Below, piece by piece: positions 58,846 to 64,000 of a stretch of DNA of 64,000 bases. The first letter of the stretch is position 1, and each line of letters begins with the position of its first letter. Under the pieces are notes generated by a model. That model did no database searches and was not told the origin of the DNA. It was given only the letters and a program-made list of their open reading frames with translations. The stretch is from assembly GCA_964035545.1 (NCBI GenBank), contig OZ037765.1, forward strand, positions 19,964,995 through 20,028,994, read 5' to 3'. The stretch comes from Bugula neritina. Lineage: Eukaryota; Animalia; Bryozoa. A program made the position numbers and the translations under genes.

Positions 58846-61800
58846 TTAAGCACATTTGCTTGGATTCTCTTCTGCAATTTCTTTGACAGCGGTAGCAAAT
58901 CTGTCAAAGTTTTGGAAGTCACCGAGTCCGTAGGCAATGTCATCTCCTTTTCCGGTAATAATTTCTAGCTCACAGGCTCGGGCGTTAGCAACTCCCATTG
59001 CAAAGACGTTTACACCTGTAAAGAGAAGTAGCCTACTATAAAACCCATTTACATGACTTATATGAACATAAAGAGTGCCAACATGTAGGTAGATAGAATC
59101 TTTTTAAAATGTAATGGTAAATGTCATTATATAGAGAATTCAACACTTTCTATCAACCATGTTGGCCAAATAGCTTTGATTAATGGAAAAAAATTCACCG
59201 GTACTTTTCTGAAACGATTCCTATAAATCTAATAGGACTTGTTCTACCGATTAGGCAGAATTATATGCCTTTTAAGATACATGGCTATAGGCATTCACCT
59301 TCTATTATATTATCACTAGTAATATGATATATTTGAATAATTAATTTCCAAAGTGTCTATTAAATAGCTTTTAAGGCTTTATTTTTTGACATATTTACTC
59401 AAATTAGAACAACAATCCTTAAAAAGAGGTGTGCAGTCTTGTTATGTTTCATAAAAATGAATTGGCGCTAAACAATAGCTATACTGCATCAGTGTGAAAC
59501 ATCGATTATAATTTTGCAATTTGTGCAATTTATGTTTAATATAGATATTATATACCGTGACCCAGTTTTCTAATAGCATTGGCTTCAGTTCCAAGGACAC
59601 GACAATTCCTGTTACATTGACCATCAGTAATAATAATGACGTCAGTAGAGACTTGGGGGTTGCTAAGTCTGCTAGATCCCTAAACGAGAGTGAAGCTATT
59701 ATTACCATGCACACATATTATAACTTACATATATGTGAATTACGTTCATGATTCAGGGCTCAAAATTCTTAGGCAAAAACTCATAAAATTTCAACTTAAA
59801 CTAAAACTTGGCGCTTTTTTAATATACCTAGTCTAAAACAACCGAAAGTCAAGCTTTTAGATGCTGTTTATGCTCTAGGGTTAAGATGCTTCAGTAGTAC
59901 AATAATACTACGTTATAACATAAATAATACACATTTTAAAGATATTTTAGTTTTTAAATTCTATTCACATAACACCATAAAAGCAAATCCTTTTTTTCAT
60001 AGCACATTTGATAAATATATCTTCATTTTTTACTTTTTTTTTTTTGAGGATTGTTATAATTTATAATTTTAAAAATTAGGCTGTTTTAATTATGCATTTA
60101 ACAGCAAAATTTGAGTTAAAAATTGGTGACCATGACAACAATGTTTGCAAACCTTTCCGAGTACACTATTCTTCACATATGCCAAAGCATCACCAGTGGC
60201 TGTTGAACCTTTACGGTGTTTTATACTCAGAATCTTATCTTGAAGATATCCCAAACCCTTAGAGCTTTCACTGAAGTCTACTTCTGTGGTCACTCTAGAG
60301 TCAAACAGGACCACGGAGATCTGCTTGCTGCCTTCTTCTGTGACAGCGTTTCCTGTTCGAAACATACGAAACATTATTTATGATTCATAATCATAGCAGT
60401 TATAATTTTTATAGCAACCATTATAATGAATTATGATAACCACGTCTCAAAATATAACATCAAAAAATAAATCAAAAGGTGAGAACATCATTTAAATTTT
60501 AAGAGCCAAACTGCCATATTAATTTACATCTCGTTTAATTTTATATCCCTAAGCAATTTATAAACACTAATAATAACATATATAATCCCATATACCAAAT
60601 TTAGAGGGACAAAATGATTCAATCAGCACGTTGATAGCCTTCTTTGCTTTATCGAACTGAGCTTGTGGGATGCTGCCAGATGAGTCTAACACAAACACAA
60701 TGTCACGGTTAGCCAGTCTGTCTTCCTCTGATCTCTTGCCTTTGATTAGAGAACTTGAGATGCCACTAGAGACACCCTTGGTGATTCCGCCCCATGGGAA
60801 ACTTGGAAAGATTGGCTTGTTGATGATGTTGCTACTTCCCAAGCATGCATCCTCAAATGCTTGACTAACTGGGCGAGCTAGAAGCTGTAACAAAGAGTTT
60901 GATCATGATACAAAATTGAACTTATATTGAAATTCTTTATGTAAACTTGATTTAGGTCAGTTGGTAGTTATTGTAGATATTGTACCGCCCTTATAAGTTA
61001 ACTCTTTTCAGTGTGTAGACTCAAAAAGTTTCTTTTTTTTTTTTTAATTTTTGTAAGTTTCTAGTATGTTGCATTTATTGAAAGTTAATTGTTGTATTGG
61101 ACCATGAGAATACAAGACTCTATATACTAGCATATTGCTCCGCTTTTAGCATTTCATTTTCTACTGAAACTACATAAACTGATAGCCTGCACATTTGAGT
61201 TATTAGGTATGTGAAGATACATATTGTTGCTAGCTAGACTTGCTTTTTAATTTTAGCTTACAATACTATCAGTATAAACGCATATTGAAACACAAAATTG
61301 TTAAAATTAGTAGCATAAATCCATGAGAACACAATTTCTTCTCATCAAGGCATAATCTCAGTTTTATTTTAACATTTTGAATATATATCAAATAGTAGTA
61401 ATCTGAAATGTCCTAATAGTTTGTTTACATATGGATGTTTTTCATAAAATATTATATATTTGAAGGATAACTCTAAAATATACTCATTTTAAAAAAATAA
61501 TTTATGACATATTGAGTCATAATGCAACTGTTTAAATAACGTAGCTTACCGACTTTTGTCCCAGCTGGTTAGCAAAACCTGCTGCTGCACTTTTAATAGC
61601 TGAAGCAGATACTACAAAAATGTTGCAAATATTTTATATTCATAGTAGCTAAACTGAAGCATTTATTTGTGACTTGATGATAATCCTGGCAATATCATCA
61701 TCTACTATTTTTAATTATATTACTTAAGAATTATTTTCAATTTGTAAAATTACATACAAAGTTCCAGAATTGAAAAAGAATAGTAAACATGCTCACCTGC

Positions 61801-62157
61801 ACTGACTACAGCTCTTTTACTCCTATAAAGTAAAAAATTATTTAATAAATATTAATTTGGTCAGAAGACAGCTTGCTGCAATGATTTAAAGAAAAACTAT
61901 ATAAATTCACAAGTGCATTTAAAATATAGGATTAAAAAGCAATTTGGAATTTAGAATTTGAATGTAATATTTTTTCAACTCTTCTTTCAAATATTGAAAA
62001 TGCTCATCTATGATCTCTTTGAGCCTAGAAACTTTTTTATTGAAATATAATATATATTCTTATAATGTTGAATAAACTTGTTTAATTATCTCACTTACCA
62101 GCTTTTGCAGGAAGCCGAGACAAAGAGGCAAGCGAGCACCAAACAGGCAACCTTCAT
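58846..62157 (-). CDS. Secreted single von Willebrand factor A domain protein with a dibasic-processed N-terminal peptide, 7 exons
   Basis: Exons at about 62157-62099 (signal peptide MKVACLVLACLFVSASCKS), 61822-61797 (WSKRAVVSA), about 61610-61550, 60884-60596, about 60354-60153, 59679-59556, 59015-58846. Complete MIDAS: DIVFVLDSSGS, GSTATGDAL, VIIITDG; also VNVFAMGV. Ends NPSKCA*. Confidence 0.9.
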
Positions 62158-62249
62158 CTTGTAAGTTGATGTGGATAGTGTTTCAATACTGCTAAGAAAA
62201 GTTCTAAGGTGATGCTGCCACATGACAGTGTGAAATAACACTTGGTAGT

Positions 62250-62257
62250 TGACGTCA
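62250..62257. promoter_or_regulatory. Perfect CRE palindrome TGACGTCA in the 391-bp divergent intergenic region
   Basis: Exact 8-mer lying between the two head-to-head ATGs (62157 and 62549). Confidence 0.45.
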
Positions 62258-62548
62258 TGGAATACTTGGACTTACTATCAGCATAGCCTAATGATCATCA
62301 TTAGAAGTTGTTCCTAGTTCAAGATAGTCTAACTTTAGTTACATACATTTAACATTAGTTCACAATGTCAAGCTAAATGTTAAAACTGGTACTTTTTAAA
62401 TAATTAGGACTGCGTGTAATAAATGTTATAGTAAGGATCTCAGTCTAATTAATAGCTGCATGAGAAAAACCAGGTGCTGAGCTTTCTCTCAGTTATGGAA
62501 TCATTTTTTTAATGTTCAAAGGCATTGTTATATAGAGTAGGCATAATA

Positions 62549-63878
62549 ATGTATCTGGGGACTGCTTTTGCTTTATTGTCAATATTGTAAGTGCTTATAT
62601 GTATACACATTTTATAACATGTATATAAACACTTATTTGTGTGAGATTGTCAAAAATTTATCAACATCAGCATTATTTTGATAATCTACTGTGAATTTTC
62701 ACTTCAAACAGCATTTTTTATTTTAGTGTGCAAGCTTGTGCTTTGTATTGTTGAGGCTTTGGGTGAAATGTTACATAGAGCATATGTTTTCTTTTCACTG
62801 CACAACTCAATAAACACTAAAATTATGTGGGATTTCCCAATAAACTATGTCTTTTAAATGTTTATCAGCTACAATTCTATAAAATAAATTGGCACACACT
62901 GTCTATTTTTATTGGGTTGAAAAGTTGCTTTTAAAATATAAAGACATCACTTATAAAAAATGTAGTCAACAAGCAACAGTAAAAATATCTGCGCTTAAAT
63001 CATATACAACTTTATAATAGCTTAATCTTAACTCAAGTTAGTGATTTTATTGCATAAATTTTGTCATTTTCTTACCTTACTATCTATACATTTGTATTAG
63101 GTACGCCAGTACTTGTGTCAGAGGGAATGAGGATGTGCTGAGGAGCTTGGTTGCTGGTCACTATGATGCATCAAGTGTTTCAGTAGCCCGAAGAGCTCTT
63201 CTTCAAAGTAAGAGGTTTATATTTTACATCTCTTATATTATATGATTATATAGATACAATAAGAAGCCAATGTGCATGTTTTGTAAAAGTCACAATTACT
63301 TTATAATTCACCACGATTTTATATATCGTTTTAGTATTATAATATAGTCTCTATTTAAAACAGTGATTGTAACCAAGATGTTTGTTTCGGTGCAATAACC
63401 ATCATATCTATATTCTCTGTTAACTGAAAAATATATGAAATAGCCATATTCACAAATGTTCAATTATATGCTAAGCCTATTATAAAAAGTATGATGCATA
63501 TATGTGTGCTACAAGTTATAACTTTTTGTTATTATTATTGGTTAAAAATTATTTTGTTACATAAAGCTTTCGAAAACAAAACCCACATATACATACATCC
63601 AAAAATATTATTGTAATTTAATAATATCAACTTTGGCTTTAGAAATTAATTGAATTTTCTAGACTAAGATCTCTGAAGTTGTATTATACAGGCGCTGGCA
63701 TCTCAAACCTGGCTAATGCATTTGCAAGTCAAATAGGAACGCAACAAAAGTCGGCTGCTGTTGATGCTAAAGGAAGAATTCTACCTTACATTCCTCAGTA
63801 CCAGATCTCTCAACAGACTAGTTATGTTGATAGTTGTCTTGGCTACACCAGAGGAAAGAGAGAATTCCTGCATCAGCT
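62549..63878 (+). CDS. 5' part of a secreted precursor paralogous to the VWA gene (continues past the window)
   Basis: Phase-consistent exons 62549-62586, 63101-63207 and 63692-63878 give MYLGTAFALLSILYASTCVRG NEDVLRSLVAGHYDASSVSVARR ALLQSAGISNLANAFASQIGTQQKS...SYVDSCLGYTRGKR EFLHQL. Confidence 0.8.
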
Positions 63879-64000
63879 GTAAGTAAATATTAAATTACAA
63901 GTGAAGTTTACAAACAATATTTATACTTATTTATACATTTCTAACTTAATAGGAACAAACATTGTTTGCTCAAAAATGAAGTTTTATTAATCTCATAGTG

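Follow-up and report, generated by a model that had tools for sequence, protein, structure and literature searches.

Two head-to-head genes at the end of a 64,000-nucleotide stretch of Bugula neritina DNA (the window) raise the question of whether their products are precursors of free amidated peptides, as an initial annotation proposed, or proteins that keep the peptide on the VWA domain that follows it. In the joined exon models, gene A lies on the minus strand and gene B on the plus strand, with start codons 391 bp apart. Gene A has 7 exons, each with AG/GT borders, and a 930-nt coding sequence for a product of 309 residues; gene B has 6 exons, the last 3 of which lie beyond the window end, and a product of 323 residues. 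Both models use canonical splice sites and occupy the positions first assigned to them, and the peptide strings quoted from each are present (KR-AVVSA..FANQLGQKS..FEDACLG..LIKGKR in gene A and RR-ALLQSAGISNLANAFASQIGTQQKS..YVDSCLGYTRGKR in gene B). The two products share a layout in which a signal peptide (assigned by eye from the hydrophobic N-terminus) and a K/R-R site precede an N-terminal module (N-module); G-K-R comes next, and a VWA domain whose MIDAS is intact completes the protein.

Exon 1 of gene A (62099–62157, minus strand, as for all exons of this gene) holds the start codon and the signal peptide MKVACLVLACLFVSASC..., and ends at a GTAAGT donor. Exon 2 (61797–61822) encodes S-K-R (KR codons at 61813–61818) followed by AVVSA, the start of the N-chain. 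Between them lies a candidate extra exon of 45 nt, LKEIIDEHFQYLKEE (61980–62024), with the acceptor TTTCTAG and a weak donor, GTTGAA; it keeps the reading frame of its two neighbours and resembles the acidic pro-segment found at the same place in orthologues. The conserved helix AIKSAAAGFANQLGQKS, encoded by exon 3 (61550–61611), recurs in L007 and corresponds to helix 53–66 in the AF2 model of the orthologue P0154. Exon 4 (60596–60884) contributes FEDAC(63)LG (Cys codon at 60843–60845), a disordered linker and G-K-R (60732–60740), and continues with the spacer SEEDRLANR, the first VWA strand and the MIDAS motif DSSGS (60672–60686). The remainder of the VWA domain comes from exon 5 (60153–60352), with the MIDAS Thr region GSTATGDAL (PF00092, E 2.5e-05), exon 6 (59556–59679), in which VIIITDGQCNRNC supplies the MIDAS Asp and a CxxxC pair, and exon 7 (58846–59015), which encodes ARAC(268)ELE, then Cys308 at the C-terminal end, and closes with the stop codon. 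An intronic T-run lies at 60017–60052.

Gene B (plus strand) begins with the start codon and signal peptide MYLGTAFALLSIL... of exon 1 (62549–62586; donor GTAAGT). Exon 2 (63101–63207) completes the signal peptide and encodes the pro-segment GNEDVLRSLVAGHYDASSVSVA-RR (RR codons at 63189–63194), followed by ALLQ; the orthologous Watersipora exon reads GNEDVLRSLEAGQYDERSIDTAKR-ALLQS. Exon 3 (63692–63878) encodes the helix ISNLANAFASQIGTQQKS, YVDSC(97)LG, G-K-R (63853–63861) and the start of a connecting peptide, EFLHQ. A second site, AKR, and the VWA domain follow in exons 4–6, at window-equivalent positions 64381–64523, 64751–64953 and 67289–67582 (1881–2023, 2251–2453 and 4789–5082 of L005). 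The extension past position 64000 that the initial annotation had called for therefore yields a VWA match for the plus-strand gene just past the window end (E 6.8e-10).

In gene A, PF00092 scores 28.6 bits over exon 4 and 25.0 bits over exon 5, against a cut-off of 23.8. The predicted metal site is complete in both genes (DSSGS, GSTATG and TDG in A; DTSGS, TSTAT and TDG in B), and its residues are invariant (D130, S132, S134, T210 and D245 of P0154). In structural and full-length family analyses, the joined A and B models were represented by their database orthologues P0005, P0154 and P0107, and searches with the two genes themselves used their exons. The fold is nearest to collagen VI N2, mussel PTMP1, VWF A2/A3 and integrin I domains. 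Identity between A and B is 47% over the whole length, 56% in the VWA domain and 28% in the N-part. Taken alone, the N-modules show only weak similarity (local score of 36 versus 23.7 +/- 4.3 for shuffled sequences, with 29 of 2000 shuffles reaching 36), and the homology of the pair is secure because the family alignment backs it. Together with the gene models, that alignment bears out the description of A and B as paralogs with prohormone-like signals; the B. neritina genome holds 4 genes of this VWA-protein family.

The full-length relatives found come solely from bryozoans (Watersipora), brachiopods (Lingula) and unnamed transcripts, and sequence comparison places A and B in a small, undescribed bryozoan/brachiopod family of secreted single-VWA proteins. 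Orthologous uninterrupted coding sequences on mRNA-like JGI contigs of ~1 kb align collinearly with both models. A listing of sequencing runs gave only two that share words with the queried sequence, a metatranscriptome with 0.10 of the words and another run with 0.65. Family proteins span 294–350 residues, with PF00092, PF13519 and PF13768 as their only recorded domains. In RefSeq the relatives are uncharacterized or "collagen-like", and the labels collagen alpha-1(XIV)/(XXII)-like arise because the VWA part best matches domains of the collagen VI, PTMP1, VWF and integrin kind. We rejected a collagen XIV/XXII identity, as no Gly-X-Y triple-helix, FN3 or TSPN domain is on record; membership in Pif/BMSP, as no member has a chitin-binding family on record; and a PTMP1-type tandem VWA pair, as each gene has one VWA domain. 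P0046 was likewise rejected as a member, since its profile match, from position 9, comes without the Cys motif and G-K-R. No paper on the family was found by accession search or by a literature search on von Willebrand proteins in Bugula neritina; VWA is unmentioned in the Bugula neuropeptide prediction and in the brachiopod and phoronid neuropeptidomics papers, and papers on the shell proteome of Lingula report plentiful VWA proteins that are not mappable to the family accessions. Pfam searches of the N-parts gave no family match, the sole entry being an insignificant one to PF24153 for P0159 (E 0.33), and an ESM Atlas search by features returned no usable match. The statement that this architecture belongs to no described family thus agrees with the literature and Pfam searches.

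The N-chain ends in G-[KR]-R in 21 of 23 distinct genes; the two members without Gly are P0159 (LSKR) and P0011 (FTRR). Alignment A2 shows R45, D83, C85, G87, G113, K114 and R115 (P0154 numbering) to be invariant, so the conservation of G-K-R in homologs, on which the initial annotation hinged, holds. R45 is the Arg of the N-terminal dibasic site, and its gene A counterpart lies in exon 2. The linker preceding G-K-R varies from 4 to 31 residues across members (18–31 in A-types, 4 in B), is far less conserved than the VWA domain (0.51 versus 0.92) and is disordered (pLDDT <50). The residue before the Gly is mostly hydrophobic. In B-type genes, G-K-R is shifted to adjoin the DSCLG motif and the VWA-proximal site is AKR, EKR or ERR; because of this shift, we conclude that the Gly goes with the point where the N-chain ends and not simply with a cleavage site. 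P0107, P0138 and P0158 have two G-K-R-type sites, some members have dibasic-flanked spacers, and a second dibasic site 7–12 residues downstream recurs in several lineages. Because P4 of the G-K-R site is mostly non-basic, sequence and established knowledge suggest a prohormone-convertase site more readily than a furin site. The hallmarks of a neuropeptide-precursor layout are all present, namely a signal peptide (again by eye), dibasic-flanked peptides and a Gly amide donor. The genome also encodes copper monooxygenase (PHM-type) domains, for which PF01082 cannot tell PAM from dopamine-beta-hydroxylase-like enzymes. These features suggest that the chain would be cut at G-K-R and the N-chain amidated.

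The cysteines and the predicted structure bear on whether such an N-chain would leave. In every subfamily, the Cys count of the N-part is odd, at 1 or 3, and that of the VWA part is 5 (C155, C248, C252, C282 and C322 of P0154, all invariant in alignment A2); the two extra N-part Cys of Lingula-type members, which flank the first G-K-R, occur both together or not at all. The N-module, of ~40 residues, pairs an amphipathic helix, A-A-x-x-F-A-x-x-[LI]-G, with the invariant motif D-x-C-[LIV]-x-G. A complex model of P0154 residues 46–90 with 116–323 and Mg scored 0.70, against 0.25 for the best of 3 controls, a level that 51 of 78 solved complexes attain in calibration, against 2 of 108 mismatched pairs; the score is a model confidence, peptides and predicted chains lie outside the kinds on which the tool was tested, and the added Mg departs from the calibration. 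At least 89% of the contacts recur between runs, with partner pLDDT of at least 77, and the lowest-error contact joins C282 to C85, both invariant. The AF2 monomer of P0154 has pLDDT 55–77 over residues 50–87, and that of a Lingula member leaves most of the N-part undocked, with residues 61–125, including the D-S-C motif, at pLDDT <50. Because of the Cys parity and the docking with an invariant Cys contact, a disulfide-linked two-chain product is likelier than a free peptide. The initial interpretation thus survives in part: its paralogs, prohormone-like signals, VWA domain and conserved G-K-R stand, and the release of a free peptide of 55–70 residues that it proposed now looks the less likely outcome.

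The best reading, which we hold with evenly balanced confidence, is that A and B each encode an extracellular VWA protein of two disulfide-linked chains, nicked by a convertase and probably amidated. The pre-pro-protein would run from the signal peptide through a short acidic pro-segment to K/R-R, the N-module, the linker to G-K-R, a spacer and the VWA domain. A prohormone-convertase-type enzyme would take off the pro-segment and nick the chain at G-K-R, and in gene B and brachiopod-type members a second dibasic cut would excise a connecting peptide of ~7–12 residues. Carboxypeptidase and an amidating enzyme would then probably convert the Gly to a C-terminal amide. The N-chain would be retained, packed on the alpha5-alpha6-alpha7 side of the VWA domain and held by a putative disulfide, Cys63–Cys268 in A and Cys97–Cys282 in B, by homology with Cys85–Cys282 of P0154. 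The mature two-chain protein may bind a ligand through the MIDAS metal, in an adhesion- or matrix-type role. In integrin I domains, the alpha7 helix controls how tightly the MIDAS binds, and we entertain, as a doubtful proposal taken as a whole, a lophophorate-specific signalling device or switch in which the amidated N-chain is either a tethered regulator on the alpha7 side of the VWA domain or cargo released on reduction or ligand binding.

The two-chain reading has to be weighed against an ordinary single-chain matrix protein, which would lose only its signal peptide, and perhaps its pro-segment, and whose G-K-R would stay uncut in the secretory pathway, conserved instead as, for example, a patch for basic binding or a site for an extracellular protease. 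In its favour, the VWA domain folds like those of collagen VI, PTMP1 and VWF, the N-module docks as a subdomain would, and VWA proteins are common components of the matrix and shell matrix in Lingula and molluscs (PMC4595640). However, an exact G-K-R is invariant at the end of a linker that otherwise varies in length and sequence, the motif has moved in B-types yet still ends the N-chain, and several lineages have the downstream second dibasic site; we consider a single-chain protein rather unlikely. At the opposite pole stands a true prohormone, from which convertase would free one amidated signal peptide (two in the Lingula type), leaving the VWA domain as a co-released partner or granule carrier. 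Neurophysin is such a granule carrier for vasopressin, and the signal peptide, acidic pro-segment, K/R-R and mostly hydrophobic-G-K-R sites, doubled in three members, all fit, as do the dibasic-flanked spacers, the Gly kept in nearly all genes, the location of G-K-R in a disordered linker and the undocked N-part of the Lingula model.

A freed peptide, however, would bear an unpaired Cys and leave the VWA domain with five, and the docking model brings the invariant Cys pair into contact. What is conserved, moreover, is a folded helix and a D-x-C motif, not a short C-terminal pharmacophore, and the silence of published bryozoan and brachiopod neuropeptide surveys weakly points the same way; we judge a true prohormone unlikely. 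Some invertebrate antimicrobial and toxin precursors have an acidic pro-segment, then K/R-R, then a helical Ala/Lys-rich peptide, and the resemblance, along with restriction to few lineages, could suggest a toxin, antimicrobial or defence precursor in which the activity would reside in the helical N-peptide, as a cationic, amphipathic agent. This is highly improbable, as the helix is predicted to pack on the VWA domain, the N-part has little net charge, the family lacks large lineage-specific expansions, with 4 genes in the B. neritina genome, and the sequences, unlike fast-evolving toxins, are well conserved between bryozoans and brachiopods.

Several known systems resemble the two-chain reading in part. 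Vasopressin/oxytocin-neurophysin precursors also have a signal peptide, an N-terminal peptide, G-K-R with Gly as amide donor and a Cys-containing folded peptide-binding domain, but their peptide has 9 residues rather than 60–80, neurophysin takes the place of VWA, the attachment here is predicted to be covalent and the sequences are unrelated. As in insulin/relaxin, two dibasic sites flank a short spacer in gene B, P0002, a third Watersipora copy and Lingula-type members, and excision would leave linked chains because cysteines are predicted to bridge the cut; the fold is unrelated, one chain is a 200-residue VWA domain and A-types have a single dibasic site, so the analogy is one of logic only. 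The molluscan Pif97/Pif80 and BMSP are likewise secreted lophotrochozoan VWA precursors with a dibasic cut, at RMKR (PMC11291548). Chitin-binding domains and a large, acidic product from the C-terminal part distinguish Pif; the bryozoan/brachiopod family has no chitin-binding domain and would be cut N-terminal of VWA, at G-K-R. Collagen VI alpha3 N-domains, PTMP1, VWF A and integrin I domains match the VWA domain best in both structure and sequence, with MIDAS, but have neither the N-module nor the five family cysteines, and the family in turn has no collagen triple helix and no second VWA domain. Integrin alpha subunits and calcium-channel alpha2-delta, which holds a VWA domain with MIDAS, become two disulfide-joined chains by a secretory-pathway cut; they are large, membrane-anchored, without an amidation-type Gly and non-homologous outside the VWA fold.

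The unnamed N-terminal module and its processing logic, in which amidation-type G-K-R sites are predicted always to be disulfide-bridged, are so far undescribed for VWA proteins. If the two-chain reading is true, neuroendocrine-type maturation would serve in making an adhesion or matrix protein for the extracellular space. The family would then also mark the clade and be a candidate for study in larval adhesion, the cuticle or the shell, in a group whose animals foul ships and aquaculture gear. Were the N-chain a tethered regulator or cargo, evolution would have co-opted hormone-type processing to arm an adhesion domain outside the cell, and a free peptide would define a peptide-hormone family that is new and unusual in its carrier domain. 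A practical gain is that "collagen-like" RefSeq names can be corrected.

The 391 bp between the start codons (62158–62548) are a presumed bidirectional promoter. They contain a perfect CRE palindrome, TGACGTCA, at 62250–62257, to which we give little weight because it is absent from the Watersipora counterpart. The head-to-head order itself is conserved in Watersipora; because of this and the closeness of the two starts, the earlier idea of co-expression is plausible, and A and B are probably co-expressed from this shared region.

The two genes lie in AT-rich, intron-containing DNA of animal type (G000:C1:19964995-20028994; source assembly, 216 Mb) and diverge from start codons separated by 391 bp; their nearest relatives are bryozoan. 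Gene A occupies seven exons on the minus strand (58846–62157), with canonical AG/GT at all borders and a 930-nt coding sequence for 309 residues. Gene B starts at 62549 on the plus strand, with three exons inside the window and three more that we located in 10 kb fetched beyond its end; its product totals 323 residues, and a single gene B exon is a fusion of the last two exons of gene A. The initial annotation, whose quoted sequence strings are all present in the two genes, had asked whether gene B also encodes a VWA domain. It does, just past position 64000 (E = 6.8e-10), and the MIDAS elements (D-x-S-x-S, Thr and the T-D-G Asp) described as intact in gene A are kept in both. A 45-nt in-frame stretch of gene A intron 1 encoding LKEIIDEHFQYLKEE (61980–62024, minus strand) would give gene A the acidic pro-segment known from its orthologues, which it resembles. 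The acceptor is good, and the weakness of the GTTGAA donor leaves the stretch a candidate cassette exon. The intergenic region also holds a perfect palindromic cAMP-response-element core, TGACGTCA, at 62250–62257, which is absent from the A/B intergenic region of Watersipora; the window contains two copies against 0.34 expected, the second being coding sequence in gene A exon 6 (59637–59644).

Homology searches were run exon by exon, the joined A and B models being used in local translation and alignment only. A word search with gene A exon 4 turned up two metagenome-contig ORFs, each the size of an exon and each retaining the ACLG motif, G-K-R and LANRDIVFVLDSSGS. An exhaustive profile search recovered full-length relatives, two of which could be named, from Watersipora subatra ('uncharacterized protein' and 'collagen alpha-1(XIV) chain-like') and from Lingula anatina ('collagen alpha-1(XXII) chain-like'). 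With a profile of eight full-length members, nine proteins score at least 362 bits, followed by generic VWA proteins at 108 bits; scoring covered the 8000 candidates with the most words in common, and wider kin are possible. Collagen XIV/XXII identity was ruled out by the lack of a triple helix, Pif/BMSP by the lack of a chitin-binding domain and PTMP1 by the presence of one VWA domain rather than two. The N-parts, which precede the VWA domains, matched no Pfam family apart from one hit without significance (E = 0.33), and an Atlas search produced no usable match. We found no paper on this VWA family, whose architecture the initial annotation did not recognise as a described one.

The processing signals proved genuine, and they are conserved. 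In an eight-sequence alignment, the arginine of the first dibasic site (K/R-R), D83, C85, G87, G113, K114, R115 (numbering of the Watersipora orthologue P0154) and the five VWA cysteines are invariant, and G-[KR]-R occurs in 21 of the 23 genes that show the end of the N-chain (the exceptions are the database proteins P0159, LSKR, and P0011, FTRR). The linker ahead of G-K-R measures 18–31 residues in A-types and 4 in B; its conservation is low (0.51 versus 0.92 for the VWA domain), and its pLDDT is below 50 in the AF2 models of both P0154 and the Lingula member. B-types have G-K-R relocated beside DSCLG and a second site without glycine (AKR, EKR or ERR) 7–12 residues downstream, and the Lingula type runs from G-K-R through a spacer to K-P-K-R. 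The glycine therefore tracks the end of the N-chain and not cleavage itself, which is what an amide donor would be expected to do. An extra hydrophobic-G-K-R follows the conserved helix in Lingula and two other database proteins (P0138 and P0158); in bryozoan A/B genes the corresponding site has degenerated to G-Q-K, G-R-K or G-Q-R. P4 of the G-K-R site is mostly non-basic, a feature known to favour prohormone-type convertases over furin. The source genome contains PHM-type copper monooxygenase domains, whose Pfam family is not specific to PAM.

The initial interpretation of the pair as precursors of free amidated peptides is partly borne out, in the conserved signals, the VWA domain of gene B and the novelty of the family, but release of the peptide is the less likely outcome, because both products would carry unpaired cysteines. 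Beyond the signal peptide, the N-part contains a single cysteine in A, B and P0159 and three in the Lingula type and in the type on contig C9, and the VWA part has five in every case. The additional two cysteines of the Lingula type are either both present or both missing, and they flank the first G-K-R, so that each predicted cut would be bridged. Docking of P0154 residues 46–90 against 116–323 plus Mg also points to a tethered N-chain. The model scored 0.70 (best of three controls, 0.25), a mark that 51 of 78 solved complexes attain, compared with 2 of 108 mismatched pairs; the score is a model confidence, peptides and predicted chains are untested kinds for the tool, and Mg departs from the calibration. 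The runs concur in at least 89% of contacts, with a partner pLDDT of at least 77, and the least expected error falls on C282–C85, both invariant family-specific cysteines. The modelled N-module runs along α5, α6, β6 and α7 of the VWA domain, with no MIDAS residue among the contacts listed. The AF2 monomer of P0154 agrees moderately (pLDDT 55–77 over residues 50–87); that of the Lingula protein disagrees (pLDDT below 50 over residues 61–125).

Most likely, then, genes A and B encode convertase-nicked, secreted two-chain VWA proteins. The pro-segment would be removed and the chain nicked at G-K-R, a short connecting peptide would be excised in members with a second site, the new C-terminus would probably be amidated, and the two chains would remain docked and disulfide-linked. 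The layout of peptide, G-K-R and binding domain resembles the vasopressin–neurophysin precursor, and the logic resembles the two-chain maturation of insulin and the cut, disulfide-linked integrin α and α2δ subunits, but there is no homology to any of these outside the VWA fold. The MIDAS-bearing VWA domain is most likely the working part; its nearest matches in fold are the collagen VI N-domains, mussel PTMP1, the A2/A3 domains of VWF and integrin I domains, which suggests extracellular, metal-dependent binding. In the docking model the N-module covers one face of α7, the switching helix of integrin I domains, and we speculate that it may set the affinity state of the VWA domain. From the VWA kinship, and because VWA proteins are abundant in the shell matrix of Lingula (PMC4595640), our guess is that the family serves in the adhesion of larvae or zooids, in the cuticle or in the shell matrix.

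Four members of the family are encoded in the source genome: A and B on C1, and a more distant tandem pair at G000:C9:6466413-6475151 (fetched stretches L003, L004 and L014). The latter have a shorter N-part, lack the D-x-C motif and carry three cysteines before the site and five after; they read RR[AS]KR directly followed by ALCGA..CC..VSS[LM]AN[ST]LL..YGKR, then KPSVDLIF[VL]IDDSGS. The Watersipora model P0021 appears to join a tandem of such genes in error. Several orthologues are uninterrupted, mRNA-like coding sequences that align collinearly with the A/B exon joins; at least five distinct members are complete and intron-free on contigs of ~1 kb from environmental JGI samples (3300032727, 3300032481 and others; L011, L012 and L015–L017), which points to plentiful mRNA whose source may be planktonic larvae. 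The A and B orthologues of Watersipora are also head to head, and a third, A-like gene follows the conserved pair in tandem (L013 16476–19174, Watersipora subatra OY755158.1); its linker is rich in glycine, and its sequence runs ...WNGKR-EMS-KR-EDGVRLANRD.
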